Source: Podarcis filfolensis
Taxonomy: Eukaryota
Length of the DNA: 64,000 nucleotides
NCBI GenBank assembly: GCA_964270895.1
Contig: OZ185446.1
Strand: one strand, 5' to 3'
Of this stretch, positions 11,951 to 64,000 are shown in pieces. The translations under genes and the position numbers were made by a program. The notes beneath the pieces were generated by a model. It made no database searches. It saw only the letters and a list, made by a program, of their open reading frames with translations, and was not told the origin of the DNA. How positions within the stretch are numbered: the stretch's first letter is position 1; the number at the start of each line of letters is the position of its first letter.

Positions 11951-13180
11951 ATTGATATACGTTATTTCCCCAGTATGTTCCTCCCCAATATGTTCCTATG
12001 TTTAAGTGCCTGAAAACCCTTGAGGCATTCTTAACCAGAACACTTGAAAAGCCCAATTAAATTTCAGAGCAAACTGGCAGGGTCTCTTATATCTCTAGAT
12101 TTCCTGCTTTTCAGAATGCCATGAAAAGGGGAAGCCGAAGGAATGTCTGCTAGAATGGTGTTGCAAAGCTCCTAGGTGCTAACCAGGAAACGAAACACAC
12201 AACCTTGTTTCCATGGAGACCTATCTGGGCTCTATGTGAGATAGAACTTTAAGGGTTTTGATGGCAGGCCTTACTTTGTGGGGGTGGGCGGGGGGCTTAA
12301 AAGGGAAGAGTGTTCCTTGAGATTTCTTGGTTCCAGACTGCTGGGCTTTCAAAATGCTCAAGTCTGCAGATGAACACCTTCATGCCAGGTTTATTTCTTT
12401 GTAGCTCTTGTACTTCCCACTCCACACACATCATACCCAAACGTCCCAGAGCAGAGAATACATACAATTTAAAACAAAGTAATACACTGGGAAGAATATT
12501 ACACTGACAATATAATTCACAATGGGAATCACAAAACAGTAAAACCACCCAGTAGTAGCATTAAAAATTGCGCACTCAGCTTGTGCTTCAGAAAATGAGG
12601 TTTAACTTATTTATTCTGGAAAAAAATAGCTAGGATTTACCCCACCTGCTCATAGTCTTTTAAATAAAATTCATGCTTTTAACCCATTGATGGAGAGCCC
12701 TTTGCAGCCCAACAATCACATTCCCTGTTTGGAAGCCTTCCAAGGACCACCTCTGTCTTCAACTTTCCTTCCTTGGTGTCTTATGAGGAAGAAAAAGTGA
12801 CAAGCATGTGCATGGTCTCTGCTAGTGCCAAATGCTGTTCTCTGCTTCTTCTGACTTTGGCCACAGTCACATCATACCATTAAAGCATGATAACAGCTAT
12901 CACTTTAAACAGTCATGCCTTCCCCCAAAGAATTATGGGAGCTGTAGTTTGTGAAGGGTGCCAAGAGTTGTTAAGGATACCCTTATTCTCCAGGCATTAA
13001 TTGTGAAGCACCCTGAGAATCGCAGCTCTGTGAGAACAGGAGCCTCCTTACAACTCTCAGCACCCTTAACAAACCACAGTGCCCAGAATTCTTTGGCGGA
13101 AGCCATGCCTTCTTAAAGTGAAAACAAAAAAAAATTTTTCCTTCCAGTAGCACCTTAAAGACCAACTAAGTTAGTTCTTG

Positions 13181-13218
13181 GTATGAGCTTTCGTGTGCAT
13201 GCACACTTCTTCAGATAC
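13181..13218 (-). ncRNA. Minimal type I hammerhead ribozyme motif, copy 1
   Basis: Minus strand reads GUAU-CUGAAGA-A-GUGUG(CAUG)CACAC-GAAA-GCUC^AUAC: 4-bp stem I GUAU/AUAC, CUGANGA core, 5-bp stem II, GAAA, palindromic AGCU stem III, UC cleavage between 13185 and 13184. There is one extra A after the core. Confidence 0.8.
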
Positions 13219-13370
13219 ACAGGTTGATGGACTTCCATTTCATGCGGCTCAATGTGGTGCCTTCCATAGTTCCAGTTACAGATAGGTAGCCGTGTTGGTC
13301 TGCCATAGTCAAAACAAAAAAATTTTTTTCCTTCCAGTAGCACCTTAAAGACCAACTAAGTTAGTTCTTG

Positions 13371-13408
13371 GTATGAGCTTTCGTGTGCATGCACACTTCT
13401 TCAGATAC
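13371..13408 (-). ncRNA. Minimal type I hammerhead ribozyme motif, copy 2
   Basis: Identical to copy 1, offset by exactly 190 bp. Predicted cleavage between 13375 and 13374. Confidence 0.8.
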
Positions 13409-13462
13409 ACTCTGAAGAACTTCTTAACTTCTTAAAGTGTATCTGTAACTTCTTAAAGTGGT

Positions 13463-14358
13463 TGTTGTTGTTTAGTCATTTAGTTGTGTCCTCCCGCAGT
13501 TTGGTCAGACTCATGTTTGTAGCTTCGAGAACACTGTCCAACCATCTCGTCCTCTGTTGTCCCCTTATCCTTGTGCCCTCCATCTTTCCCAACATCAGGG
13601 TCTTTTCCAGGGAGTCTTCTCTTCTCATGAGGTGGCCAAAGTATTGGAGCCTCAGCTTCACGATCTGTCCTTCCAGTGAGCACTCAGGGCTGATTTCCTG
13701 AAGAATGGAGAGGTTTGATCTTCTTGCAGTCCATGGGACTCTCAAGAGTCTCCTCCAGCACCATAATTCAAAAGCATCAATTGTTCGGCGATCAGCCTTC
13801 TTTATGGTCCAGCTCTCACTTCCATACATCACTACTAGGAAAACCATAGCTTTAACTATAGGGACCTTTGATGGCAAGGTGATGTCTCTGCTTTTTAAGA
13901 TGCTGTCTAGGTGTCAGGGAACTGACATCGGAGCCAGGAGTGGAGGCAAGGCTCCCAAGCGATGCCGGAAAAGGGCCCAGCAGGGAGAGAGCGGACTCAT
14001 CGGCTGGGGAAGGAAATCAGCGTAACACCAGGGATAAAGGGGGGCGGATGGGGGAATCGGAGAGGGGGCTCCAGGACTCTTCGCCGGAGACCAGCGGGGA
14101 GAGCACAGGTCCTCCGCTACCCACACCCACCCTGCGCAGAAGACTTCCGCGCAGGGAAAGTAGGCGTAGACTTGGCGTCAAAGAACTTCTTTGCTGGAAG
14201 AAGTTCAAGAAACGCCCACTGACGGATTCTGCTAGCGACTGAAACAGCCACGAAGTGAAGGGCTGTCCAGCCAGGAAAAGGTTTAACCAGGCAACCTCGC
14301 CAAGAGTGGCGGCAACTTATGCACGAGCAACCCCATATAACCATTACACTAGGTTTGT
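13463..14358 (-). mobile_element. RTE-BovB LINE 3' fragment, 5'-truncated and interrupted by a solo LTR
   Basis: ORF 13476-13877 has the BovB C-terminus (KAMVFLVVMYGSESWTIKKADRR.IDAFELWCWRRLLRVPWTARRSNLSIL...LQYFGHLMRREDSLEKTLMLGK). (CAA)n tail at about 13461-13471. TSD cttaaagtggt at 13452-13462 and 14359-14369. About 55-60 bp of the 3' end appears deleted near 13490. Confidence 0.93.
13912..14348. mobile_element. Solo LTR (437 bp) inserted into the BovB fragment
   Basis: TG...CA ends (tgtcaggga...ccattaca) with a 5-bp TSD ctagg at 13907-13911 and 14349-14353. BovB sequence resumes (tttgtc) right after the right TSD. GC- and CpG-rich relative to flanks. Confidence 0.88.
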
Positions 14359-16949
14359 CTTAAAGTGGTAGCATAGTGCTTAAAATGTATCGTGTGAATG
14401 TATGTGGCCTTTCAGAGCTTTCTGCAGCCGCAGTTGGTTGGGTTCCATGCCATTTCTAACGGAGAAGGGTAAACTGCCTCTGCTCTGATCCAGGCAGGTT
14501 CCTTGAGAGAACCAGCCTATAGGTCAAAATTTCCCTGCCCTTGAACCAAGGAAACTGGTATAACTGGATCCGTGCCTTTCATTGTTGATAAACAAAACAC
14601 AGTCTCTTGATTGCTCAAACAATTAAAGGCCTTCCTTATTAGCTGTTTGTTTTTTCTAAATCTTATATTGAGTGCCTCCCACATACTCCTTTTTTGTTTT
14701 TGCTGCTTCTCTGACAGCACCAAACCAGCCAGAGTTACAGGATGTCTGGGGTCTGTGTTCCGGGTTTTCTTTTTCTAATGTGAGCACAAAGTCTCAGTGT
14801 GTGTACTTGCAGAACAAATTCCAGTTTGTCTGCAAGAGAGAATGAAAACAAAGATTAGGAGCCAAAGCTGTGTGTGATGGGTGTACGTGCCCACACAGGA
14901 GCGTGTGGGATTTGGGTTGTGGGTTGAATTTGAGTTTAAATTCGGTTTCTTGGTCTTTGGGGAATCCTGCTTTAATTCTAGCCTTAAAAAGCAATTTTTA
15001 AGTGTAGCATGCCTGCCCGCATAGTGTTGTTGTTGTGGGTTTTTTTAAAAACAGATGCTGTGTTGGATTGCTGGCAAAGACAAACGGGATCACAGTCCTG
15101 GCTCCCTGGGGAAACAACAAAGGCAGTGGGAGACCCCCTCCTTTGGCTCAAAATTGGCACAAAAACTGCTTTATGGAATCTGGTGGATATGGTTGTGGGA
15201 AAGGTCTGTGCAACCATGTGATGAGGAACTCAAGTGAATCAAAAACAGGAAGGTCTAGCAGCGTCCTAAAGTCTAACGGATTTATTGTTGCAGAAGCTTT
15301 TGTGGGCCTGGTTCTCTCCAGATGTTGTTGAACTCCAACTCCCTTCGTTCCCGGCCAGCATGCCCAGTGGTTAGTGCTTATGGGAGTTGTAATCCAGCAA
15401 CATTTTGAGAGGCCACATGTTTCTCACCCCTACTCTGTGGACTGGTTTTAACATAGCACTAAACCATGGTTTAGCACGGGGGTGGCTAACCTGTGGATGT
15501 TGTACTCCAGTTATCTGGATGTTGTACTCCAGTTCCCATTTGACCCAGCTAGCATGGCCAATGGTCAGTGGCAATGGGAACTGGAGTCCAGCATTAGTTG
15601 GAGAAGGCCCCATCTCTCGTCTTGAGCCTCGTTCATCAGACAAATGAAGGGTATTCTCAGTTAACACCAGCAGAGGTGATCATCCCGTCATCTTCAGTCC
15701 TAGTATCTTATATTCAGCCACTTTGTACTGTTTAGTGGCTAATGATAGTCATTGATAGCCCTGTCCTCCATTAACTTGACTTTAAAATGTGATCAATCAT
15801 CATTCCCACTCTGCTCAGTTCACCACTTCCCAGGGAGATCAAAATGCAGAAGGGTTGTGTTGGAACAGCATATTTAGACTGTCCCAGGGCCCGTTTCAAT
15901 TGCCCAGTCTTGTGATGCCTTGATGGAGAGTGAGTGGGGAGGCATTATTCACTTTTTATGACTGCCAAGAAGGATTCATGGCTATAGACATAGTGATAAT
16001 CACTTTATATTTATATAGTGTCAGACATCCAGTGGGAATCCCAAGTCCCTATACAAACATCATACAAGCCTTGGATCATTAGGCCTCTGCTTTACAAACA
16101 CCACGGGGTTTTCGATGCTTTAACCTCTAATAATGATTGCTCCCAGGTAGAAGATTCCTAAGCTGCAGCAACTTATTATAAATGGGAAACTCCCCTGTAA
16201 TAATCCTAGCAAACCTCAGCATTTTGCTCTTTGCGACGGACCCTGGGGAGCATTCCAGAGTGCAGATGCTCCAGTTCTGAACTTCAGTGAGTGTTGTTTT
16301 AACACAAAGAGAGATTATTTATTGCCTAAGACTACTGTGAAAGAATTTCCCTGGAGGCTAAACCTGGTGTGCTCTCTGAATTTCTCTCTCTCTGTCTCTC
16401 GAGCTCCTATTTCTAAATAAAATATATATTACAACTGCTTGGAGAGAGAGAAAAACCAACAACCCAGTTTCCTCTAAAGAATAAATAAATGTATCTTAAC
16501 AGCGCACATAATTTTTTCCAGTGGCTGAGCCAAGAAAATACATTTTGTTCCAGTATGGTTCTATGGTCCCTTCCTGAGCATTGCTCCAGTTGGATGTTTG
16601 GAGGAAGAACCTGCACCAAGTGCTATGTAGTCTTCCCAACCCCGTTGTCCATGGTGTGGTGAGGGTACTAGGACATGTACCCATTGTCATGAATTCATTG
16701 GCTCCCTCCATGTGTAAGCAATGAGTGGGGGTCAGTGCTGACACAGTCATTTACTAGTTGCACTGGTACTTGTTCCAAGGATGCTGTGAGCATGCTTGCC
16801 ATTTTTTTGTGCCGGTTTTTGTTTTACTTCCTGGCTGTGTGGTTTTCAGATGTTCCTTCCTAGACTGAAGATGCGTGTGATATGGTGACTGCTGTACTGG
16901 CCTAGCAATAGTAGCACAGTTCTGTATCCAGGACAGCTGTCTACCAGCT

Positions 16950-17550
16950 CCATCTGGTATGCAGGCTGAGACCCTACCTTGCCAGAGTGGTGCATGCTCT
17001 AGTTATCTCCCGCTTGGACTACTGCAATGCGCTCTACGTGGGGCTACCTTTGAAGCTGACCTGGAAACTACAACTAATCCAGAATGCGGCAGCTAGACTA
17101 GTGACTGGGAGCGACTGCCGAGACCACATAACACCGGTCTTGAAAGACCTACATTGGCTCCCAGTACATTTCCGAGAACAATTCAAAGTGTTGGTGTTGA
17201 CCTTTAAAGCCCTAAACGGCCTTGGTCCAGTATACCTGAAGGAGCATCTCCACCCACATTGCTCTGCCCAGACACTGAGATCCAGTGGCGAGGGCCTTCT
17301 GGAGGTTCCCTCACTGCAAGAAGCAGAGCTACAGGGAACCAGGCAGAGGGCCTTCTCGGAACGCCCTCCCATCAGATGTCAAAGAGATAAACAGATACCT
17401 GACATTTAGAAGGCATCTGAAGGCAGCCCTGTTTAGGGAAGTTTTTAACGTGTGGCATGTATTTTTAATCTTTGTTGGAAGCCACCTAGAGTGGCTGGGG
17501 AAATTCAGCCAGATGGGCAGGGTACAAATAATAAATTATTGTTGTTGTTG
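16950..17550 (+). mobile_element. L2-clade LINE 3' fragment
   Basis: ORF 16987-17409 (VHALVISRLDYCNALYVGLPLKLTWKLQLIQNAAARLVTG...DHITPVLKDLHWLPV...FKVLVLTFKALNGLGPVYLKEHL) is the typical L2 ORF2 C-terminus. It is followed by a 3' UTR and a short-repeat tail. Confidence 0.92.
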
Positions 17551-18299
17551 TTGGCAGCAATGCGTCTGAGTACCAGTTGAAGGAAACCACAGGGTGGGAG
17601 AGTGCTCTTGTGCCCAGGTCCTGCTTGTAGGTTGCCAGAACAGGACGCTGGACCCAATGGGCCATTGGCCTGATTCAGCAGGCTCTTCTTAAATTCTCTA
17701 CAGATCTCTCTACTCTAGGCATAACTAGAGTAGGAATGCTCAGCCCGGATATCCTGGGGAAACCATCTGTCTTGATGAGAGCTGACAACATCAGTTTCTT
17801 TCCTTTTGCTTAAGCAACAAGAGACATGCATTCCAGGACACAAGGGTGTGGAGAGGGAAGCTTCAGATTTATACATTTTGTAGCAGCTTCTGTTAAGGTA
17901 TAGAATTTCCACCCGAGGCAAGTGGAACAGACCGAGACAAAAGCTAAGCAGTTGTTGTGAAACATGAAGGAATGGCTATAATGCATTTGCGTTGTTATGC
18001 AAGAAAAGTTCCTCAGAAATTTGGGTCAGGGAAGCAGGACTGCAGGAATGCTAGCCGTTCTGCATTATGAACCAAAGGGACAATTGCTTCCGTTCTCGCC
18101 CCACTGTTTTCTCATGGATTCAGTAGTTTTGCTGCCTAGTCAGCACTTTGCACAATAAATGCGTGTTTGTTTCCCACTGTTGCCCCTGCAGTCTGCACAT
18201 CTTCCCCGAAGCAAGCCTCTTGGTTGCTCGGATGTCACAAAACTTGGCACACTATTTGGTACTTGCAGGAATGTGGTGCTTTTTGCAAAGTAGCTATTG

Positions 18300-18520
18300 T
18301 AATCTGTGTGACTTTGGACTTGGGTATCTGAAGGAATGCCTGCTGCCATGGGAGCCTGCCCAGCAATTGTATTCATCATCAGAGACCCTTTCCGAGGCAC
18401 CTCTGCCATAAGAGGCTTGGCTAATAACAATTTTGGAGAGGGCCTTTTTGGTGGTGGTGCCCCAGATTTGGAACAATCTCTCCCCGAGGATGCTTGCCTA
18501 GAAACTGAGAGGTAAGCAGA
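18300..18520 (+). mobile_element. Old L2 ORF2 remnant
   Basis: Translates GLGYLKECLLPWEPAQQLYSSSE, similar to L2 GLGPxYLKExLxPxxPARxLRSS. Followed by gagggcctttttggtggtggtgccc...tggaacaatctctcccc. Confidence 0.6.
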
Positions 18521-18628
18521 AAACCACTCAGACCCATGCTTTCTAGGCATGGGCCAAGCAGAAGTGTGGGCGAGCCCTAAATTGGGGCCATAATGAGGGC
18601 AAAGGGTTAAGACTACCCCCTCCCTCCC

Positions 18629-18676
<48 letters not shown>

Positions 18677-19490
18677 CCTGGCTGCCCTCTTCCTTTTGGC
18701 AGATTGTGTTTTTTATAAAGCCTGCACTTAATGGTACAGATACAGTGTGTGGACACATCATCTGGTTTGACCCTGGGGCTGCAGTTCTAGAGTCTTACCT
18801 GGCAGTAAATGCCACTGAAAACTATTTATTCCAGATCAGGAATGAGGAACCTGGTGCCCTCTGGGGTTGCTGGACTCCTGTCAGCCCCAGGCAGTCGGGG
18901 ACTATGGGGTTTGTAGTCCAGCAATACCTAGAGAGCTGCAGGTTCCCCACCTCTGTTCCAGAACGATGCCATGAGTGTATATGGCAGTAACCAGGAATAG
19001 GGGATTTCAGAAATGTGGTCTCTTATGCTAACAAACACTTGGATTCAGGCTTATTTCCATTCTGAAGGTGAAAGGGAGATAAAATAAGAGACAACAAAGA
19101 AGTGGAAGAATTGGGTATCCTTAGAAGTAATATTTTCAAGTGTAAGAACTTGTGGATTCTTTGGTACCACATATTTAAAGCAAAGCACACTGGCACAGGA
19201 CTTGGAAGCTTTGTAAGTTGAAAATGATTTCATATGCTGCAGATTCTTTTAGCTTTTAAAACCCAGACTTGGCTGCTGAACAATTATGTCATCAGCTCCT
19301 CGAATCCAAGTCTACTCCTACATCCCGGCTTTCTAAGCCCAGTAGAGCCAGAAGCATGCATGTATTTCGGCTAAATGAGATGCACGTGAACAGATATTTC
19401 TTGTAAACTAACTGGGGCTCGATTGAATTAGCATTTTGTTTGCTGTTCAGAACTTTCCTAATCTGCGCCCCTAACGTATCTACCCAAATA

Positions 19491-29137: not shown

Positions 29138-31235
29138 TTTTTTTTTTTTTTAATTATATTTTTATTCATTTTCCAAAACAATAATACAAATTGTACAAAT
29201 TTCCATACATTTGATTCCTTTTTGACTTCCTTCAACTTCTCTGATAATCATCCGTATTTACATCTCAGATACGCATTTCTCTGTTTATATTGCCATTAAT
29301 CTTCCCTCCCTCCTCTATTGCTTTTTAACAATATATCTCAACTTTTACAGTGCTTCTTGAAACCCCGCCAGCGTTGTTTGCACATCACATATTCTTTTCA
29401 GATATTCAACAAATTTCCCCCAATCCTCGATAAATTTTTGGTCTTTAAGGTATCTAATTTTTCCAGTTAATCTGTCCAATTCTGAATAGTCTGTCAACTT
29501 CAGTCTCCATTCTTCTAACGTCGGAATTTCTTCTTGTTTCCATTTCTGGGCCAGTAGGGTTCTTGCTGCTGTGACCGCATATTGAAAAAGTTTACAGTCT
29601 TTCCTTCTTATTTCATTCCCTATAATTCCTAAAAGAAAGGTCTCTGGTTTTTTAACAAATGTATGTTTTAACATCTTTTTGATTTCGTTGTAAATCATCT
29701 CCCAAAAACCCTTCACTTTCCTACATTCCCACCACATGTGGTAAAACGTGCCTTCTTTTTCTTTGCACTTCCAACACTTATTGCACGTCTTATACATTCT
29801 TGCGAGTTTTACCGGAGTGATGTACCATCTGTAAAACATTTTCATTACGTTTTCTTTTAGTACTGTACATGCGGTAAATTTTAAGTTCTGATTCCACAAT
29901 TTTTCCCAATCCTCAAACTGTATATTATACCCAATATCCCTGGCCCATTGTACCATCACTGATTTGACTTCTTCATCTTTCAAATTCCATTCTAACAAAA
30001 TTTTATACATTTTCGATAAAATTTTTCGCTCATTATTTATCACCTCTATTTGAAATCTTGAATCTTTTTCTGCATAGCCCCTTTCTTTGACTTCTTTTTT
30101 AAACATCTCGTTAACTTGAAAATAATGCAACCAATCATTAACATATTCTTTAACTTGTTCATATGGCCTTAATTTCCATTTTCCTCCTTCCTTAATTATC
30201 AATTCACCATATGTAATCCAATTACATCTCATATTTATTTTCTTTACAGTCATTACCTCTAGTGGTGACAACCAATGTGGAACTTTTGGCTCTAACAGAT
30301 TTTTGTACCTGTCCCATATTTCCAATAATGAACCCCTAAATATGTGATTCCCAAAACCTTTATGAATTTTCCTCTTTTCACACCATAAGTACGCGTGCCA
30401 CCCGAATCTGTTGTCAAAGCCTTCTAAATCTAATAGCTGACTGTTCTCTAATTTTATCCATTCTCTCAACCAGCAAAGACCTGCTGCTTTGTAATACAAT
30501 TTCAGATCCGGCAGGGCAAAACCGCCTCTCTCCTTTGCATCCGTTAACAGCTTATATTTGATTCGCGGCTTCTTGCCCTGCCAGATATATCTTGAAAGCA
30601 CTCTTTGCCACTCACTAAAAATTGTTACCCCCTTTAATATGGGGATAGTTTGGAACAGAAACAGCATCTTCGGGAGAACACTCATCTTTATCGTGGAAAT
30701 TCTTCCCCAAAAGGATAATTTCATTCTCCTCCACACATCAAGGTCTTTCCTTATTCCATTCCAGACAGGTATATAGTTATTCTGATACAAATCAATATTT
30801 TTAGGGGTTAGCCAAATTCCTAAATATTTAACCTTTTTTGTCACCTCTATCTCTGTACTTTGTTGCATTATTTCTATCATACCTTGATCCATATTTTTTG
30901 TAATTATTTTTGTTTTCTTCTTATTTAGTCTAAACCCTGCCAAATTGCCAAACTTCTCCATCTCATTCAAAACCTCTTTCACGCTTTCTAATGGTTCTTC
31001 AGTTGTAATTACCAGATCATCTGCAAAGGCCTTGACTTTGTATTCATTCTGACCAACTGTTATCCCTTTTATTAATTTATTTTGTCTTATTGAACTCAGG
31101 AAAACCTCCAGGACCATTATAAATAGTAGTGGAGAGAGTGGACATCCCTGTCTAGTACCTTTTGTTATTTTTATATCTTCTGTAGTTACATTATTTATAA
31201 TTAACTTTGCTTTCTGCTCTGTATAGATTGCCTTT
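29138..31235 (-). mobile_element. 5'-truncated LINE-1-clade element (about 2.1 kb), antisense to KIAA1217
   Basis: 16-bp TSD atcttgtcgccatttc at 29122-29137 and 31236-31251. Poly(A) tail (T-tract from 29138), AATAAA at 29161-29166 on the minus strand, and a 3' UTR of about 200 bp. Confidence 0.95.
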
Positions 31236-34600: not shown

Positions 34601-34720
34601 TCATTTAACACCAGAACTGCTTCAAAAGTGGGTATTGGGGATCAGATCAGAGGTCTCCCACATCTGATGACTGACTTTAGAAATAATATGATACACCAGT
34701 CCTGGGTGCTGTTGCAGTCA

Positions 34721-35098
34721 ACAGAAGCTGGGACAGAGCAGTGGGAGCTCACCACCGTCGCAAGACTTTAACCGCTGACCTTCCGATCGGCAAACTCAAG
34801 AGGCTCAGTGGTTTAGACCACAACACCACCTGTATCCAGTTCGAAAGCACACCAGTGCAAGTAGATAAATAGGTATCGCTGTGGCGTGAAGATAAAGCAG
34901 CATTTTTGTGTGCTCTGACACCCGTCACGGTGTTCCGTTGCACCAGTAGCTGTTTAGTCATGCTGGCCACATGACCCAGAAAACTGTCTGTTGACAAATG
35001 CCGGCTCCCTTGGCCTGAAGCAAGATGAACGCCGCATCCCATAGTTGCCTTTGACTGGACTTAACTGTCCAAGGATCCTTTACCTTTTTTTTTTAACC
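34721..35098 (+). mobile_element. Sauria SINE with inverted 5' segment (34722-34837 antisense, 34838-35098 sense)
   Basis: The reverse complement of 34722-34837 gives the SINE head (ggtggtgttgtggtctaaaccactgagcc...gagctcccactgctctgtcccagc). The sense part starts at agttcgaaagcac and ends in cctttacctttt. 14-bp TSD tgctgttgcagtca at 34707-34720 and 35099-35112. Confidence 0.9.
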
Positions 35099-38000
35099 TG
35101 CTGTTGCAGTCATGGCCTACAACCACCAGCCACATTTCAGGTGACTGAATGAAAGAATTATTGCCTTCTTAAATCCCTCTTTGTTTTTTTAGGTCACTCA
35201 CTTGTCAGTTCTTGGGTATTAACGTCCATGTGCCCACATGGGGTGTTTACAACCTTGTAGCTTAGACGCGAACGACGTCACGGAGGCACTTCAAAGCATG
35301 CCTCCATTCTCTTAAGATGAAAAATGTTAGCTGTAATTCCTGGAGAGAGAGAAGGGTGGGTGAGGGGGAATAGTTCCTCATAATCATGTCACTACAGGAC
35401 GCTGGGTAATGCCTAATATATTAATGCAAACCTTTTGTAAGCACAAAGCTCCTGAGGCTTTGGATTTCTCGTTAGGTATTTCAGAGTTATTATATTTTGT
35501 GTGTGACTGGACAAGTTGGAAACGGAGGGAGTCGAGAGAGGTTGAAGTTCCACAGCAACCTAATGAAAACCTAATAAAAAAAGCTACAGTTGCTCCTTCA
35601 GCCAAGGTCACCAAGGGAGTATGCCATGTTCTGTGTCATTTCTGCAGCAAGCTCACCTCTCCCTACTCAAAAAATAAATATCCACCAAAAAGAAAAGGCC
35701 AGATGTCAGCAATATGGCTCTTTGTTTCTGAATCCAGCTTTGATCTGAACAGCATTTTCCAACCTTCTAAATATAGAACATCGCCATTGTCAGGGTTTTA
35801 AATTAAAATAAGAACTGGGATTGAATCCAGTGTTTTGGGCAGTGCGCACGAGAATATGGGAATCAGGAATCGAGGACAAGGGCATGTCAGTATAAGAGCC
35901 GTCAATGGGCAGCTCAATACTAAGCCAGAAATGGGGTGAAGCCCCCAAGAAAAAGTAAGAACCACGAGACACAAGGTTCTAGGTGTCTGAAGTGGCTTGG
36001 ACTGTGCCACTTATGTTTTCTCAGTGCTTGAGTTGCTAATGCGACAGCTGTAGGCACCATAGTGACTTAAGACTCTGCATCTCTAGGTTTTATTTCAAAT
36101 TGAGCAAGGTGTTTTGGGGGGGAGTTGGTTGGGAAGGGGTTGCCTGGTTTGGGGGTGTCTCCTGCCTTTTTTTTTGGTCTGTATTTGTTTTGGGAGGAAG
36201 ATGTAGATCTTTGGCTTGTTTGGTGGTGGTGGTGATGTCTCAGAATCACCAGTGTTCCTTCTGTGACTTGAGCATTGTGCAGTGCCCACAACAGTTCCTT
36301 AGAGTTCCGCCAAAACTTGGGGGTTTCCAGCCCATCTGCAAGACAAATGGTTGGGGGAACGGCACAGGCTCAGAAGTGATGCAGGGCAGCCTAGATGGGC
36401 TCAGTACAGATAGCCAATGCAGACGCAGCTTTGAGCATGTTGTTCAGGCTTTCAGCCCATAATTCTGCAGTTGTTTGCAGCTCTGAAAGCTCTTACACCA
36501 CAGCTCCTCCTTTCCTCCTTTCATAACAGATTTCTAAGAGTGCCACATAGGGAAGCCCACTCCCTTTTATATTTCAACTCGTGAGCAGTTATCTCTCAGG
36601 AACTTCCAGATCTGTAGTTATTCTGGGGTATGAAAAAGTTAAGGGCAACAAATCCTCGTAAACGCTGCGTGGTTGGAATTTAGCTATGACTATAGCCAAG
36701 AACAGGCCTTTGAATCTTGCTGTGAAACTCCACTGAAGCCTTTTGCCCAGCCCTAAAATTCTTGCACGGCTGTGGAGTTCCTGACAGCTCTCCACATTGC
36801 CAAAGCCCCTTCTGCCAGCTCTCAACATGCCCGGGCCCAGCACACAATACGCTTTCCCCAGGTCTACAAAGAAAATTCTTCTAAAGACTGATAGGAGAGT
36901 AGAGATGGGTAAACTTGCCCCAGTCAACCTTGGATTAATTTAGTAATGCATGGAAATCATCATCATTATCATCCGCCCAGCTAATCTGAACTAGGAAAAC
37001 AGACTCCTCCTCCTGACTGGTCTTCTCTGATTCCTAAAGTGTCTTCTCCAGGTGGAACCTGCGGAACATTAACTCCAACTCCCATCAGTCTCAGCCAGAA
37101 TAGACAGTGGTGAGGGATGATGGGTGTTGTAGTCACTGGTTCCCAACCTCTGCTCTCTGGGCTGGTTTGACTATAACACCTAAACAGGAATGGCTAGCCT
37201 GTGGCCATCCAGATGTTGTCCCATCATCTCCAGCCACATGGCCAGTGGTTGGGGATGATTGGAGTCAGAGTCCAACAACATCTGGAGAGCCACAGGTTTC
37301 CTACACCTGCAAGTGGGAAGGTGGTAGCAGGTTGATTCCCCTCAACCTGATGTGATTATAATACAGCATGCTGGGTAAATGGGAAAAAAGACAGAACTAT
37401 GTCTTTCTCTTATGACTGCTAAGATAAACCATTGAGAGGAAGAGAATGTGGGGGTTTTAGAGAGTGGTTGGATGGTGAGTAGAGAACCTGGGAATTCTTT
37501 TCCGGATCAGATTTTAATCTGAATATTTTTTATTTTGAGGGAATAAATCAGTGCTGGACCAAAGCTGCTCTGTCCCAGCCTTTCTGTTTGAAGTGGTGGA
37601 ACTTTTGTGTACTTTCACATGGGAGAATGTAGGTGGGTAGGAGGCATAGCATTATCATATCAAGTGACCAAATATTTTTGCAAGGGGTGTTTCTTTCACT
37701 TAACACATCAAAAAAGAAAAAGAAGAAGAAAAGGAAGAAGATGAAAAAGGTGCCACCAATTGGAGGTGTAGTGAACAGCCCATCTGCTTTCTATCCTCGG
37801 CAGAGCCCAAATGGCACACTGTTGCTTGAAAGAAATATGACTTCTGTCATTGGCATGAACACTTTGAGTGAAGGGCAGGGTTTTAAAAAACGTGGTGATA
37901 CAGAAGACTTAAGAGTGGAAGGTCAAAGTAGAGAGAGTATAAATTTGTCCCCTGTCCTCTTAGCTGAGTAATGCCTCTTCACACAACTAGCACAGCGATA

Positions 38001-38648: not shown

Positions 38649-39384
38649 GTAAGGCGCTACCCACATTCTACTGCTGAACTAATGCCAGGTTTTGTTATGC
38701 ATCTAATATTGTATGTTCTCCATGTTTATTTTACTCCCCAAATGTCTTTCAGAGTGAAAAAAAATGGTGAAAAACACAAATGAGAGGAGAGGAAGAACTT
38801 GACTTTTACTTAGCGGGCTGAGACCATGGTCCATCATTGTGTATGAACTCAGAGAACTGTGGCTTGTTCTACCTCCAAGTAATCATAGCAAACCTGGATC
38901 AAACTGCACTTTGATATATTTGTTATCTAACTCTGATTTGAATAAGCTACAGTTCCTTGGGTTTGTAAATGACTGGGAACCGGGCTGTGTTGTAAAGCGG
39001 AAAGGGAAGCTTCTTCTCATGAACAAATGAAGGAAAGGGAGAGTATGCAATCTCAAGATTTGTACAGGCTCCCATAAAACAATCTAAGACAGCCTTCTTA
39101 ATCTAGTACACTCCAGATGTTGTTGGGCTCCACTTCATGTCAGCTGCCGTCAGCTTGGTCAATGGTCAGGAATGATGAAACTTGTCATACAGCATCATCT
39201 GGATGATATAACCTCTACTACTCCTCGTTTAGATGATTGGCTGGATTTGGTTTTACTGATCCAGTGTTTGTTTCTCAGCCTCGGATGGGAATTATTATGG
39301 TCAGCCTCATAGATGAATGAGTAAAGGTTGCAAAGCCATTGTGGGTCACAAATAACTCCCCCAGGCTATATCCAGCCCAGGTGG

Positions 39385-39530
39385 CAGAATGGGTCAGTGT
39401 GTGTGGCTGTTAACCAGAAGGTTAGTGGTTCGAGCCCACCCAGGGTAGAGCTGTGGCCAGGATTCCTGCATTCCAGGGGGTTGGACCAGGTGATCCTTTG
39501 GGTCCCTTCCAACTTACAATTCTGTTATCA
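39385..39530 (+). mobile_element. Short tRNA-like SINE with a CR1-type 3' tail
   Basis: gaaggttagtggttcgagccc (B-box-like) followed by ggggttggaccaggtgatcctttgggtcccttccaacttacaattct, a CR1 3' end motif. A similar tail is at 21075-21125. Confidence 0.6.
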
Positions 39531-42484: not shown

Positions 42485-43747
42485 TGAACATCTACCTACT
42501 TTGTGTTTATTCCCTATCTCATTATTCCCCCACCCACCCCATTTCCAGGAGTGGCTTTTTGGTGGGGCACAACTGACAGGCAACGCTATATTATTCAGGC
42601 TCTACCAAAGCATTTATTCCTGACCAAGTAAAATCAAAAGTTCTTTTTGTTAGTTGGAAAAGTTTTATCATTTATACATGATTTTTTTGGTTTCTTGGGG
42701 GGTCGAAGAGGTGCTTTTCTGAAGGAGTAAATGCACGTGTGCTCACTTTTGTGGAATGTTTGTCAGTACATACGTTGTAGAAGCCCACATTTCATTTGCA
42801 GCAGCTTATGAAAGGCAAAGAGACAAGCTTTTCTCTCTCTACGTAATTTTAGAACCTGGCTCATCCAGTGATGATTCTGAGTAGGAGAAGATGAAGGACA
42901 GACCCATGAACCTGCTTCTTGCACATAGTTAAACTCTGCTAAGACAAAATGTGATTGTGACTACCAGTTCAGGGTTTTTTTTTAAAAAAAGGAATTAGAC
43001 AAATTAATGGAAGATAATATTGCCAATGGCTAAGGATGGCTGTATCCTGTCTCCAGGACCAGAATGAATGTGCTCTTACCATCAATCACTGGGGAACAGC
43101 AGAAGAGAGCTATTGTGTTCATGTCCTGCTTGTGGCTTCTCATAGGTATCTGATTGGCCGCTAACAGAAACAGGATAATGGACTAGATAGGCAATCCATG
43201 GGGAGTCTGCCATCCTCCAGGTGTTGCTGTGCTGCACTCGCATCGGCTGTAATGGCTGGGCTGCTGGGAGCTGGAGCCCAGAAACATATTGAGGGTCGCA
43301 AGTTCCCCATCCCTGAGATAGGTCTGATCCTCCCACTGTTTCATTTCTTCATTTCTTCATTCCATCATAATTATGATGTAATGCTCGTTGGGATCAGTCA
43401 AATTTCCTTCCCAAACTGCAGGAGGGTCCATATACTGTAGGAAAGAGAAGCAGATATCCCCCAGAGAGTGGGATCCAAGTATATAAATGTGCAGTTTATC
43501 TATAGTATAACCCTTTATATGACCAATGCCCCATTCACCAAACCTCAAAGGTCAATGCTTATAGGACATTTGCACTATACTGTTTGGCAACTGAGGTTCA
43601 GGGTTAAGTAAGTAGGAAGCTATTAATTTGGCTTAGCATTCCCCCCCCCCTCTGCCATTCCTCATAGGCCCCCAACTTGTTCCAATCTAATAACTGTCTC
43701 ACAATAGCTGTCAAAGGGGTGTTATCCACTTCTCTTTGGGAGGATTC

Positions 43748-43860
43748 AGGTAGGTAGCCGTGTTGGTCTGACACAGTTGAAATATATTAAATTTTTAAAA
43801 AAATTTGGAGCCCAACTAAGTTTGTTCTTGGATATAAGCTTTCGTGTGTATGCACCTTCT
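43748..43860 (-). mobile_element. Degraded third copy of the hammerhead-bearing Penelope-like repeat
   Basis: aggtagccgtgttggtctg...ccaactaagtttgttcttggatataagctttcgtgtgtatgcaccttct aligns to 13285-13400. The CUGA core is lost and stem II is disrupted. Confidence 0.75.
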
Positions 43861-44729
43861 CTTTGGGAGGATATGACTGAACTCTCACTGATGGTATGCA
43901 AACAGGTTTGCACTCAAAAGCGACTAGTGAGACATGCCTTCTGTTAGAAGATTTCTGAAATTTCATCCCTCTATTCTGTAGTTCTTTGCATATTAGAAGA
44001 AAATTATCTGCGCCGAGTTTAGGGAGATAGCTATATTTGATTAGTCGAGAGGGATTCCTCACTCTGAATGGCATTTTCTAGATTATGTAAACAAACAGTT
44101 GATAATTTGGAGATAAAGAATTCCTTCCCTAAATATGTCTATGTAGCATTTGATAAAGCACCAGTGATAAAGTACACAGTGTATACATTTGATCAGTGGC
44201 CCCACTTCTTCCAAGTGATATGGAGTCAGAAGTTGTAATTAAGGGGTGTTTAAATAATAGACAGTGATTTATTAGCTGCATATGGGTTCAAAGACTGTAG
44301 GTTTCACACCATTTCACAGCCACAAACAACATGCCATCATACTCTTAAATTGCCTCGTTAAACATTAATGCTTCTTGAGTGATGCTTTTCTGCGGCATTT
44401 CCACCTTTTCATCGAGCTGCAATACTGTGTGTCAAAATCAACTTTAGAACAAATAATTTTTAAAGTTCAGAATATGGCAGCCCCATTAATGATTGATTGG
44501 TACTTCCTGCCTGGAGAACACCCATTGGTTGTTGTTTTTCTGTATACAGCTAAGGCCTTTGCCTTTGACCGTAAAACTCTATACGGCTTGGAATCCTGGA
44601 TAGCCAAAGGCTCACCAGCTTAGGTATGAATCTACTTACTGTATAGAATCTGTATTGGATGCCCTGCTCCAGGTACTTCTTTCTTCAGAGGCTGGTGAAT
44701 GGTAATAAGGGCTTGCATCCAATGTAGTA

Positions 44730-50206: not shown

Positions 50207-50405
50207 GTGTTTTGTACCTTCAGTACGGAGATGAAACTAAACAGCTAAGGATGCCCAATGAGATCACGAGCACAGATACAATCCGTGCCCTTTTTGTAAG
50301 TGCCTTCCCCCAGCAGCTGACAATGAAAATGCTGGAGTCCCCCAGCGTGGCAATATACATCAAGGATGAGAGCAGGAATATCTATTATGAATTAAGTGAT
50401 GTAAG
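50207..50405 (+). CDS. KIAA1217: KIAA1217 internal coding exon, 199 bp, phase 1 to phase 2 (conserved N-terminal SRCIN1/SKT-family region)
   Basis: Acceptor ttttttgtcctcatag|GT and donor AG|gtaagt. Encodes (G)VLYLQYGDETKQLRMPNEITSTDTIRALFVSAFPQQLTMKMLESPSVAIYIKDESRNIYYELSDV(R), near-identical to recalled KIAA1217 and distinct from the paralogue SRCIN1 (GVLFLQFGEETRR...). Phase joins the previous exon. Confidence 0.97.
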
Positions 50406-50711
50406 GTAAGTAAGTAAGTAAGTAATAACAATAATAATAATGTTGCTTTGGTTAGGTTGGGTTGTTAAGACGTGGTACAGTGTCAAAGGGTTACAGATCA
50501 GAAAGGAAGACTTCACATTTTTTTGTCTCTCTAAATCCTCCTGTTATCCAAGCACAACTTTTCACATCTTTCCTGCAAGAGGAATGGGAAAACTCCCAAG
50601 GTAGAAAGCAGCTTTAGCTTTCTATATCACTGGCCATGCTGACAGGAGATGGCTGGAGTGTAGTCTAAAAGCAGTCAGAATGGCACAGGTTCTTGTCTCT
50701 GTTTTAAATTA

Positions 50712-51249: not shown

Positions 51250-51427
51250 CACACTACACCTTTAAAGCACCTTCAAAGCACATTTTCCCCCTCAAAGAAT
51301 TCTGGACACTGTCATTTGCTAGCATTGCTGGGAATTGTAAATCTGTGAGGAGTGAACTACAGTGCCCAGAATTTTTTGAGGGAAAGGAACTGTTTTGAAT
51401 GTGCTTTAAGGGGGATGGTGTGTGTGC
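51250..51427. mobile_element. Palindromic MITE, same family as the 12859-14410 host (another copy near 63300-63470)
   Basis: ttaaagcacattttccccctcaaagaattctgg ... cccagaattttttgagggaaagg...tgtgctttaa inverted arms. Confidence 0.65.
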
Positions 51428-52662: not shown

Positions 52663-52756
52663 GAACATTCAAGACAGATCTTTCCTTAAAGTTTACAACA
52701 AAGATCCTGCACATGCTTTCAATCACATGCCCAGAGCTGTAAATGGAGATGTAAGG
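52663..52756 (+). CDS. KIAA1217: KIAA1217 internal coding exon, 94 bp, phase 2 to phase 0
   Basis: Acceptor ttctcaattctag|G and donor AGG|gtaagt. Encodes NIQDRSFLKVYNKDPAHAFNHMPRAVNGDVR (recalled human NIQDRSLLKVYNKDPAHAFNHTPKTMNGDMR). Phase joins the previous exon. Confidence 0.95.
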
Positions 52757-63096: not shown

Positions 63097-64000
63097 TATT
63101 ACTGTAGAAGTAGGAAGCTGCCCTATATCCTGTCAGAGTAACCCTTTACTGTGCACTTGGACTGGCAATGGCTTTACCGCCTCAGGCAGAGGAGTCCTGT
63201 CACTCAGTATCCATCTTTTTTAAAACCAAAAACAAAAACCTAGAGATTGAACATAGAAATTTTGTCATACAGTGCATATACTTTATCCCTCAGCTGGCTG
63301 TGTACACACCATTTAAACTACATTTAAAGCACATGACTTTCCCCCCAAAGAATTATGGGAACTATAGCTTAAGAGTGCCGTGCATTGCAGTACTGTGGGG
63401 GCAAACTGCAGTTCCCAGGATTCTTTGCAAAAAGTCATGTGCTCTAAAAGTATGGTGTATGTGCATGCATGGTCCCAACTTATAGTATTCCACTAATCAA
63501 AGGAACTAGATAAAATATAGCAGCTTTTTCCAGCCTAAGTAGGAACACCAGAGCCTGTAGCAGCCTACCAATTCTGTGGTGTATGAATATTTGTCAATGC
63601 TTAAGAACCCAGTGTCATAAGATTTGCAAATATATTTGTATCTTGCTATATGTGGATCGAGTCAGGGTGGGGAGAGGCAATAAGCCACAATATGTTTATT
63701 TTCCATTAGTGAGCTGGAGAGAAAGCAATGGGGGGAAAGTGAATATGCAATATATTTATTCCCCCTGAAGTCCAGTGTTCTTATTTTTAATACAACATCT
63801 GCTTACAGGTGTAATCTTGTACAAATGGCAAAGGATGATTTGTGCATTCTTTTGCTTTTCTTTTGTATTAGTTTCATGCTAACCTGTTCCATAGTCTTAT
63901 AATAGAAAACATATCTTTAAAAATCAGGTTGCTTGACAATGCCATTTGATACTGAAAAGGTTATGTTTCTTGTTGTTCTTGTTTTAATCTGAAGCTGTTT

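Follow-up and report, generated by a model that had tools for sequence, protein, structure and literature searches.

A probable single insertion of a short Penelope-derived unit with paired minimal hammerhead motifs, antisense in an intron of Podarcis filfolensis

Penelope-like elements (PLEs) carry minimal hammerhead ribozymes that are recognized by a base between positions 9 and 10.1, a G10.1-C11.1 pair, palindromic positions 15.2-16.2, and an essentially absent helix III, by reason of which they must act as dimers (Cervera & de la Pena 2014, PMC4209133). Insertions of PLEs bear a signature of their own, consisting of an upstream 5′-truncated copy that serves as a pseudo-long terminal repeat (pseudo-LTR), often an inverted 5′-truncated copy, and a tail of 30-40 base pairs (bp) (Craig et al., PMC8557442). 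Related to PLE pseudo-LTRs are the non-LTR retrozymes, which were found in four of five sampled reptiles with a mean consensus of 176 bp and whose mobilization mechanism was named as open (Li, Clavereau & Pollet 2026, 10.64898/2026.07.22.740005); mobilization by PLEs is the current supposition (PMC7229834; 10.64898/2026.07.22.740005). We describe here a locus in a 64,000-nucleotide (nt) stretch of the Podarcis filfolensis genome (contig OZ185446.1, assembly GCA_964270895.1), with the whole stretch referred to as the window. Positions 13109-13460 probably record one insertion of a noncoding, PLE-derived unit of ~190 nt, a "mini-Penelope", situated within an intron and antisense to its plus-strand AIP3-domain (KIAA1217-like) host gene. 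Such a mini-Penelope is equivalent to the vertebrate non-LTR retrozyme of recent papers, and the locus adds a copy to a class known under the names of PLE minimal hammerheads and reptile non-LTR retrozymes.

Two identical 38-nt strings on the minus strand, at 13408-13371 (hammerhead A) and 13218-13181 (hammerhead B), constitute two minimal type-I hammerhead motifs. Each reads GUAU-CUGAAGA-A-GUGUG(CAUG)CACAC-GAAA-GC-UC^AUAC, with predicted cut sites at 13375/13374 in A and 13185/13184 in B. An earlier note on this DNA, made by a model from the letters, had reported the pair at 13181-13218 and 13371-13408 within a 100-bp direct repeat; the positions proved exact, and the repeat measures 104 nt. 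Both copies hold the catalytic core CUGAAGA ... GAAA ... UC in type-I topology with stem I open, an extra A following CUGAAGA, and a stem II (GUGUG/CACAC) closed by a G-C pair. Helix III is reduced to an A-GC-U palindrome, which admits a nested domain-swapped dimer of computable energy, and the partner for that dimer is the identical motif 190 nt away on the same strand. All four published hallmarks of PLE minimal hammerheads are present in the two motifs, and the assignment made in the earlier note, to the Penelope-like and retrozyme kind with a near-absent palindromic stem III, holds: the class is that of the minimal type-I hammerhead, built to act as a dimer. The earlier note had entered the 4-bp stem I and the extra A as caveats. 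Both are family traits and not weaknesses, since published PLE hammerheads show them (PMC4209133) and Poseidon_Ac from Anolis carolinensis has the same layout with a stem I of only 3 bp. Stem I, being open and devoid of loop 1, affords no contacts between the loops of helices I and II. Stem II is in addition a perfect 14-nt palindrome, GTGTGCATGCACAC, at 13193-13206 and 13383-13396, by which two copies can join in an intermolecular helix II of 14 bp in place of the two hairpins.

The motifs were weighed against chance with a strict descriptor that comprised a stem I of at least 4 bp, CUGANGA, a bulge of 0-1 nt, a G-C-closed stem II of at least 4 bp, GAAA, a palindromic insert of 2-4 nt, and UH. 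In the 128 kilobases of both window strands it retrieved only sites A and B, and it matched nothing in 300 dinucleotide-preserving shuffles. The 30-nt hammerhead core likewise had two matches in the window against 0.00 expected. The loose core-only pattern, with three occurrences found and 1.77 expected, is not significant by itself. This chance frequency of the loose core, the lack of an Rfam match, and the tail of a long or short interspersed nuclear element (LINE or SINE) that adjoins the insertion would all suit a motif arisen by chance in an unrelated, LINE-dependent SINE and locally duplicated by slippage or unequal crossing-over. Against such an origin stand the empty shuffles and the four hallmarks, as well as the ends of the element, to which we return below.

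The anatomy of the insertion can be read directly from the sequence (Table 1). Hammerheads A and B lie in the two members of a direct repeat, 13117-13220 and 13307-13410, which are 104 nt long, 97% identical, and 190 nt apart from start to start. They differ only in an A/T homopolymer run and in one base at the 3′ junction, with no substitutions outside the run over ~86 aligned bases. A single 12-nt target duplication encloses the whole 311-nt insert, so both repeats sit within one duplication pair, and the insert amounts to 1.55 unit lengths of 190 nt. Along the minus strand the order is target, inverted tail fragment, target, filler with snap-back, truncated copy, full unit, and target. The full unit itself runs from a 35-nt tail (13310-13276) through a 55-nt linker (13275-13221) to the hammerhead with 62 nt beyond it (13220-13121). 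The partial tandem characteristic of PLEs is accordingly present, as a 104-nt copy followed by a 190-nt unit in one target-duplication pair. The tail holds the AC-rich GACCAACAC, which pairs in the predicted fold with GTTGGTCT of the preceding segment.

Two small pieces mark the 5′ junction. The inverted fragment TTACAGATA reaches 11 nt at 100% identity when the flanking AG is counted, and the chance of a random 9-mer occurring in the element is ~0.001; it is read as a tiny inverted copy that would have been primed from the other DNA strand at the second of the two start sites defined below. The filler piece TTCTTCAGA stands five bases from TCTGAAGAA of the hammerhead A core and forms with it a 9-nt snap-back scar. 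A candidate for the inverted 5′ copy of PLEs therefore lies in the right position and at a low probability of coincidence, but both pieces are very short, a fragment of 9-11 nt and a snap-back of 9 nt.

A BLAST search of the 190-nt unit against the window returned one further family member, 74-89% identical to the unit, whose 3′ end reads ...CCTACCTGAA / ...GACCAACACGGCTACCTACCTGAA and whose 16-nt target-site duplication is perfect. Its 5′ truncation and target duplications point to target-primed reverse transcription. Together the two copies define two end sites. Site 1, 64 nt past the cut, is the end of the direct copy (...GTTTT), and site 2, 99 nt past the cut, is both the end of the second copy and, within 2 nt, the start of the 9-nt inverted fragment. 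Three independent ends thus fall at just two positions, 35 nt apart. The PLE protein of Anolis makes nicks in both DNA strands and extends them (Frangieh et al. 2024, PMC11167929). It starts internally at two sites in an AC-rich stem-loop, so that a tail of ~34 nt (nt 85-119) is optional, and with the cut near nt 26-30 these start sites lie ~55-59 and 89-93 nt from it (PMC11167929). The two sites 35 nt apart in the present family suggest the same PLE tail. An exact-pattern scan of metagenome contigs with a 24-nt motif from the tail gave no match.

These ends also bear on the chance motif in a LINE-dependent SINE. The element has no poly(A) or LINE-type tail, its ends are confined to two fixed positions separated by 35 nt, one of which is also where the inverted fragment starts, and one duplication pair encloses both repeats; we regard that origin as very improbable. 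The near identity of the two hammerhead copies had suggested a young family in the earlier note. The repeats most likely derive from one insertion and the second copy has diverged to 74-89% identity, from which the family is older than the insertion, and only the insertion itself is most likely young, provided that both repeats were laid down when it occurred.

The favored course of events would be as follows. A PLE reverse transcriptase/GIY-YIG endonuclease supplied in trans would have nicked both strands of an AT-rich site, and reverse transcription would have started inside the RNA at one of the two fixed sites 35 nt apart. From there, 1.55 unit lengths would have been copied from uncleaved multimeric RNA or from re-ligated circular RNA, templates of this kind being indicated because the complementary DNA runs across both cleavage sites. 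The product would be the partial tandem typical of PLEs, and its hammerheads would be pseudo-LTR ribozymes belonging to the element itself, their identity being due to a single recent copying event.

Several observations weigh against this account and keep it at the level of the probable. At the gathering threshold the Rfam hammerhead families had no match in the whole window, and a search at E<=10 over the 451 nt of 13050-13500 returned no hammerhead and two chance matches, to models of a long noncoding RNA and a small nucleolar RNA; the search with hammerhead models that the earlier note had proposed as a check was in this way negative even at the relaxed threshold. Rfam hammerhead models include the stem III hairpin that minimal hammerheads lack, and a miss would be expected. 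Tandem Repeats Finder made no call for a 190-nt period, of which only 1.55 copies are present. A third target copy, upstream, and the additional TTAAGAAG make the junction more complex than the textbook case, and the target sites are merely moderately AT-rich. Both family copies come from one window, the two-site pattern draws on only three ends, one at site 1 and two at site 2, and the sole other copy in the window begins inside stem II and offers no stem II covariation. The likeness to Poseidon_Ac was judged by eye, and no homology beyond architecture is claimed. Finally, the analysis turned up no autonomous element that shares this hammerhead and tail.

The unit is 190 nt long, has a GC content of 0.42, and is noncoding; it contains no reading frame, and the ATG in loop II runs into a stop after nine codons. 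Because it has no reverse transcriptase (RT) or GIY-YIG frame, the element is non-autonomous. Among eight long open reading frames (ORFs) of the window scanned with Pfam, the only RT match was in the ORF at 29345-31117, which gave no GIY-YIG match; it is probably a LINE and is not put forward as a Penelope partner. Alternatively, instead of a distinct non-autonomous family, the locus could be what is left of an ordinary autonomous PLE, running from a hammerhead and the start of a reading frame to a pseudo-LTR and hammerhead, that inserted here and afterward lost ~2.5 kilobases of its interior by deletion. Autonomous PLEs have exactly such ends and most of their copies are truncated or rearranged (PMC11167929; PMC8557442), and the other copy in the window does not extend far enough to reveal whether the junction of linker and hammerhead is a feature of the family. 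In this locus, however, a 55-nt linker without a reading frame joins the hammerhead repeat cleanly, the length of 190 nt fits the sizes of reptile retrozymes (mean 176 bp; 10.64898/2026.07.22.740005), and repeats free of substitutions leave little time for a large secondary deletion, so a relic of this sort is unlikely. Under the favored reading of one insertion of a PLE-derived unit, the unit may further be a currently mobile, protein-less mini-Penelope that keeps only the hammerhead and the stem-loop at which reverse transcription starts; we hold this extension to be rather doubtful.

Whether the hammerheads work is a separate matter. The earlier note had proposed that a minus-strand dimer could cut at both predicted sites and release a 190-nt monomer able to circularize, and a working retrozyme of this kind would feed the circle into retrotransposition. 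Both cores are intact and identical and bracket exactly one unit, a fully nested domain-swapped dimer is possible through the AGCU palindrome, the template of the insert, whether multimer or circle, exceeded one unit in length, and in amphibians dimeric retrozymes cleave better and circles are formed (PMC7229834). Folding predictions point the other way. For a 251-nt minus-strand transcript, with stem I and the AGCU helix III swapped between copies and stem II kept as hairpins, the best structure containing the dimer was predicted at -46.8 kcal/mol, compared with -51.9 kcal/mol for monomer-type helices and a minimum free energy of -71.0 kcal/mol, which leaves the active dimer fold short of the minimum by ~24 kcal/mol. 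The minimum-free-energy structure encloses the core of hammerhead A in a 9-bp snap-back hairpin, and in it the two stem II palindromes of 14 nt pair preferentially with one another. The 190-nt circle is predicted at -33.3 kcal/mol with 55% of its bases paired and, at z = +0.82 relative to shuffles, would be no more structured than these.

Published relatives also speak against a working retrozyme. Minimal hammerheads cleave weakly even as dimers (PMC4209133; review PMC6765202), and eight of nine Xenopus dimer elements did not cleave (Li et al. 2026, 10.64898/2026.07.22.740005). Cleavage by the hammerhead of the Anolis PLE requires the PLE protein, mutants of this hammerhead do not impair insertion in vitro, and no starts or ends of RNA-seq reads were seen at its cut (PMC11167929). 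The motif here also lacks loop-loop tertiary contacts. In principle the AGCU palindrome could unite the two hammerheads in a domain-swapped dimer, as modeled above; given the energy of that predicted fold and the poor cleavage of published minimal hammerheads, weak activity is to be expected, and the hammerheads at this locus are most likely silent or very weakly active. A working retrozyme is thus quite unlikely, and the release of a circularizing monomer finds no support in the predicted dimer and circle folds or in these weak relatives. Taken as a whole, the earlier note is partly supported: its class and the antisense orientation stand, the young family and the caveats fall away, and the release of a monomer is unsupported.

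The orientation follows from the host gene. A coding exon at 50207-50406, located with short KIAA1217 peptides, scores 33.9 bits with PF03915 against a curated cutoff of 31.6, and the protein Atlas also gives AIP3; by those peptides the gene is putatively KIAA1217, with Pfam and the Atlas giving AIP3 only. A second plus-strand coding exon of the AIP3-domain gene lies near 52664-52756 with clean splice signals. The host exon, with its splice sites, is on the plus strand and the hammerheads are on the minus strand, which bears out the claim of the earlier note that they run antisense to the pre-mRNA, and because the ribozyme strand is the antisense one, there is no evident risk to the host gene.

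Other features of the neighborhood are listed here for completeness. The insertion target stands at the end of a palindromic repeat (12901-13120) resembling a miniature inverted-repeat transposable element (MITE), the 72-nt arms of which are 83% complementary with termini CACTTTAA; weak partial matches to it occur at 51293-51384 and 63332-63379. The possibility that this repeat had cut the downstream copy short was rejected, as the sequence below 12900 shows no continuation of the element. On the other side, 13461-13700 on the minus strand is the 3′ end of a LINE or SINE that finishes in (CAA)n and is presumably of BovB/RTE type. For this tail, no RT motif was found in 13461-19000 on the minus strand, and there was neither a Pfam match nor a match to the Sauria SINE at 34707-35112. 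The sole Rfam match at gathering level in the window is a transfer RNA (tRNA) at 39375-39447 on the plus strand (36 bits, E 0.0007), which may represent either a tRNA gene or a SINE head of tRNA origin.

Table 1. Features of the insertion, of the second family copy, and of their surroundings in the window
Feature	Position	Strand	Basis or remark
(CAA)n end of LINE/SINE tail	13470-13461	-	sequence
Target copy 1, CACTTTAAGAAG, immediately adjoining the (CAA)n LINE/SINE end	13449..13460	-	repeat comparison
9-nt inverted fragment TTACAGATA	13440..13448	-	reverse complement of TATCTGTAA at 13284-13276
Target copy 2, CACTTTAAGAAG, upstream target-site duplication of the direct insertion	13428..13439	-	repeat comparison
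5′ junction filler, 17 nt	13411..13427	-	8-nt period; 9-bp hairpin in minimum-free-energy fold
Filler part 1, TTAAGAAG, repeats last 8 nt of target	13427-13420	-	
Filler part 2, TTCTTCAGA	13419-13411	-	reverse complement of TCTGAAGAA at 13405-13397
Copy A, 5′-truncated, pseudo-LTR-like; hammerhead A and 66 nt ending in A7T7GTTTT run	13307..13410	-	
Unique sequence between repeats, 86 nt	13306-13221	-	
35-nt tail between two observed reverse-transcription start sites	13276..13310	-	ends and fold
55-nt linker joining tail to hammerhead B, without open reading frame	13221..13275	-	
Copy B, 3′ part of full unit; hammerhead B and 62 nt, ends at start site 1 (tail-less, ...GTTTT)	13121..13220	-	
Target copy 3, CACTTTAAGAAG, downstream duplication; also terminus of MITE-like repeat	13109..13120	-	
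~220-bp palindromic MITE-like repeat, insertion target at its end	12901..13120	.	inverted-repeat comparison
Second family copy, 5′-truncated inside stem II, ends at start site 2 with tail	43745..43855	-	BLAST of unit against window
Upstream 16-nt target-site duplication of second copy, TCCTCCCAAAGAGAAG	43856..43871	-	
Downstream 16-nt target-site duplication of second copy	43729..43744	-	
590-residue ORF, first 100 residues match end of RVT_1 profile (E 1.4e-9)	29345-31117	-	Pfam
Coding exon for N-terminus of AIP3 domain, AG acceptor, GTAAGT donor	50207..50406	+	PF03915, E 2.6e-8

The value of the locus is modest: it offers a clean worked example, in one young insertion with intact target duplications, of a partial tandem, an apparent scar of both-strand priming, and two tail-defining start sites on a unit without an ORF. 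The pattern of ends at two sites, found here on a unit that lacks an ORF, would link retrozyme-like units with the internal initiation of PLEs. Were the unit indeed a currently mobile, protein-less mini-Penelope, the locus would be an in vivo fossil of what the Anolis PLE has until now displayed only in vitro, namely priming of both DNA strands and internal initiation at two sites 35 nt apart, and the template copied would have been a ribozyme RNA in circular or multimeric form. Genome-wide confirmation of this would give direct structural proof that vertebrate retrozyme-like units are mobilized in trans by PLE enzymes.

Set beside known systems, the locus resembles the LTR retrozymes of plants (Cervera et al. 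2016, PMC4918200) in being non-autonomous and in having two terminal repeats, each with a hammerhead, that bracket an excisable RNA. Plant retrozymes carry type III hammerheads, true LTRs of ~350 bp, a primer binding site, and a polypurine tract, together with 4-bp duplications, Gypsy-type mobilization, and circles of 600-1000 nt with high GC content (PMC4918200), and none of these features is seen here. With the non-LTR retrozymes (Cervera & de la Pena 2020, PMC7229834) it shares other traits: these too are short (150-450 nt), AT-rich, and noncoding, need a partner copy, and combine a type-I hammerhead with target duplications of more than 4 bp; the unit falls within the 2020 description in size, GC content (0.42), and duplication (PMC7229834). 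That definition, in contrast, calls for the canonical type with loop-loop contacts in place of the minimal PLE hammerhead found at this locus (PMC7229834). Non-LTR retrozymes also form long tandem arrays, whereas 1.55 units are present here in a dispersed insertion with target duplications, and the predicted 190-nt circle is unlike the highly self-paired circles of retrozymes. By a later rule, a retrozyme consists of two or more units in succession, every one of them with its complete hammerhead (10.64898/2026.07.22.740005); with two complete hammerheads bracketing one unit and only 1.55 copies, the present case is borderline.

A further close counterpart is the minimal hammerhead of PLE pseudo-LTRs, in particular that of Poseidon_Ac (PAc). 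In Poseidon_Ac the hammerhead junction consists of CUGAGGA, U, a G...C-closed stem II, GAAA, CG, UC, and a stem I of 3 bp (PMC11167929), and the core layout is shared, namely CUGANGA, an extra base, a G-C-closed stem II, GAAA, a palindromic dinucleotide, UC, and a stem I of 3-4 bp. Poseidon_Ac differs in stem II and in the downstream sequence, and the present unit is distinguished from it by a length of only 190 nt, the lack of an RT/GIY-YIG frame, the perfect 14-nt stem II palindrome, and the inserted A7T7 run. With its partial tandem and tail, and possibly with its tiny inverted piece, the locus fits the insertion signature of PLEs. As in the Anolis PLE, an AC-rich stem-loop follows the hammerhead, and two start sites ~34-35 nt apart lie at similar distances from the cut.

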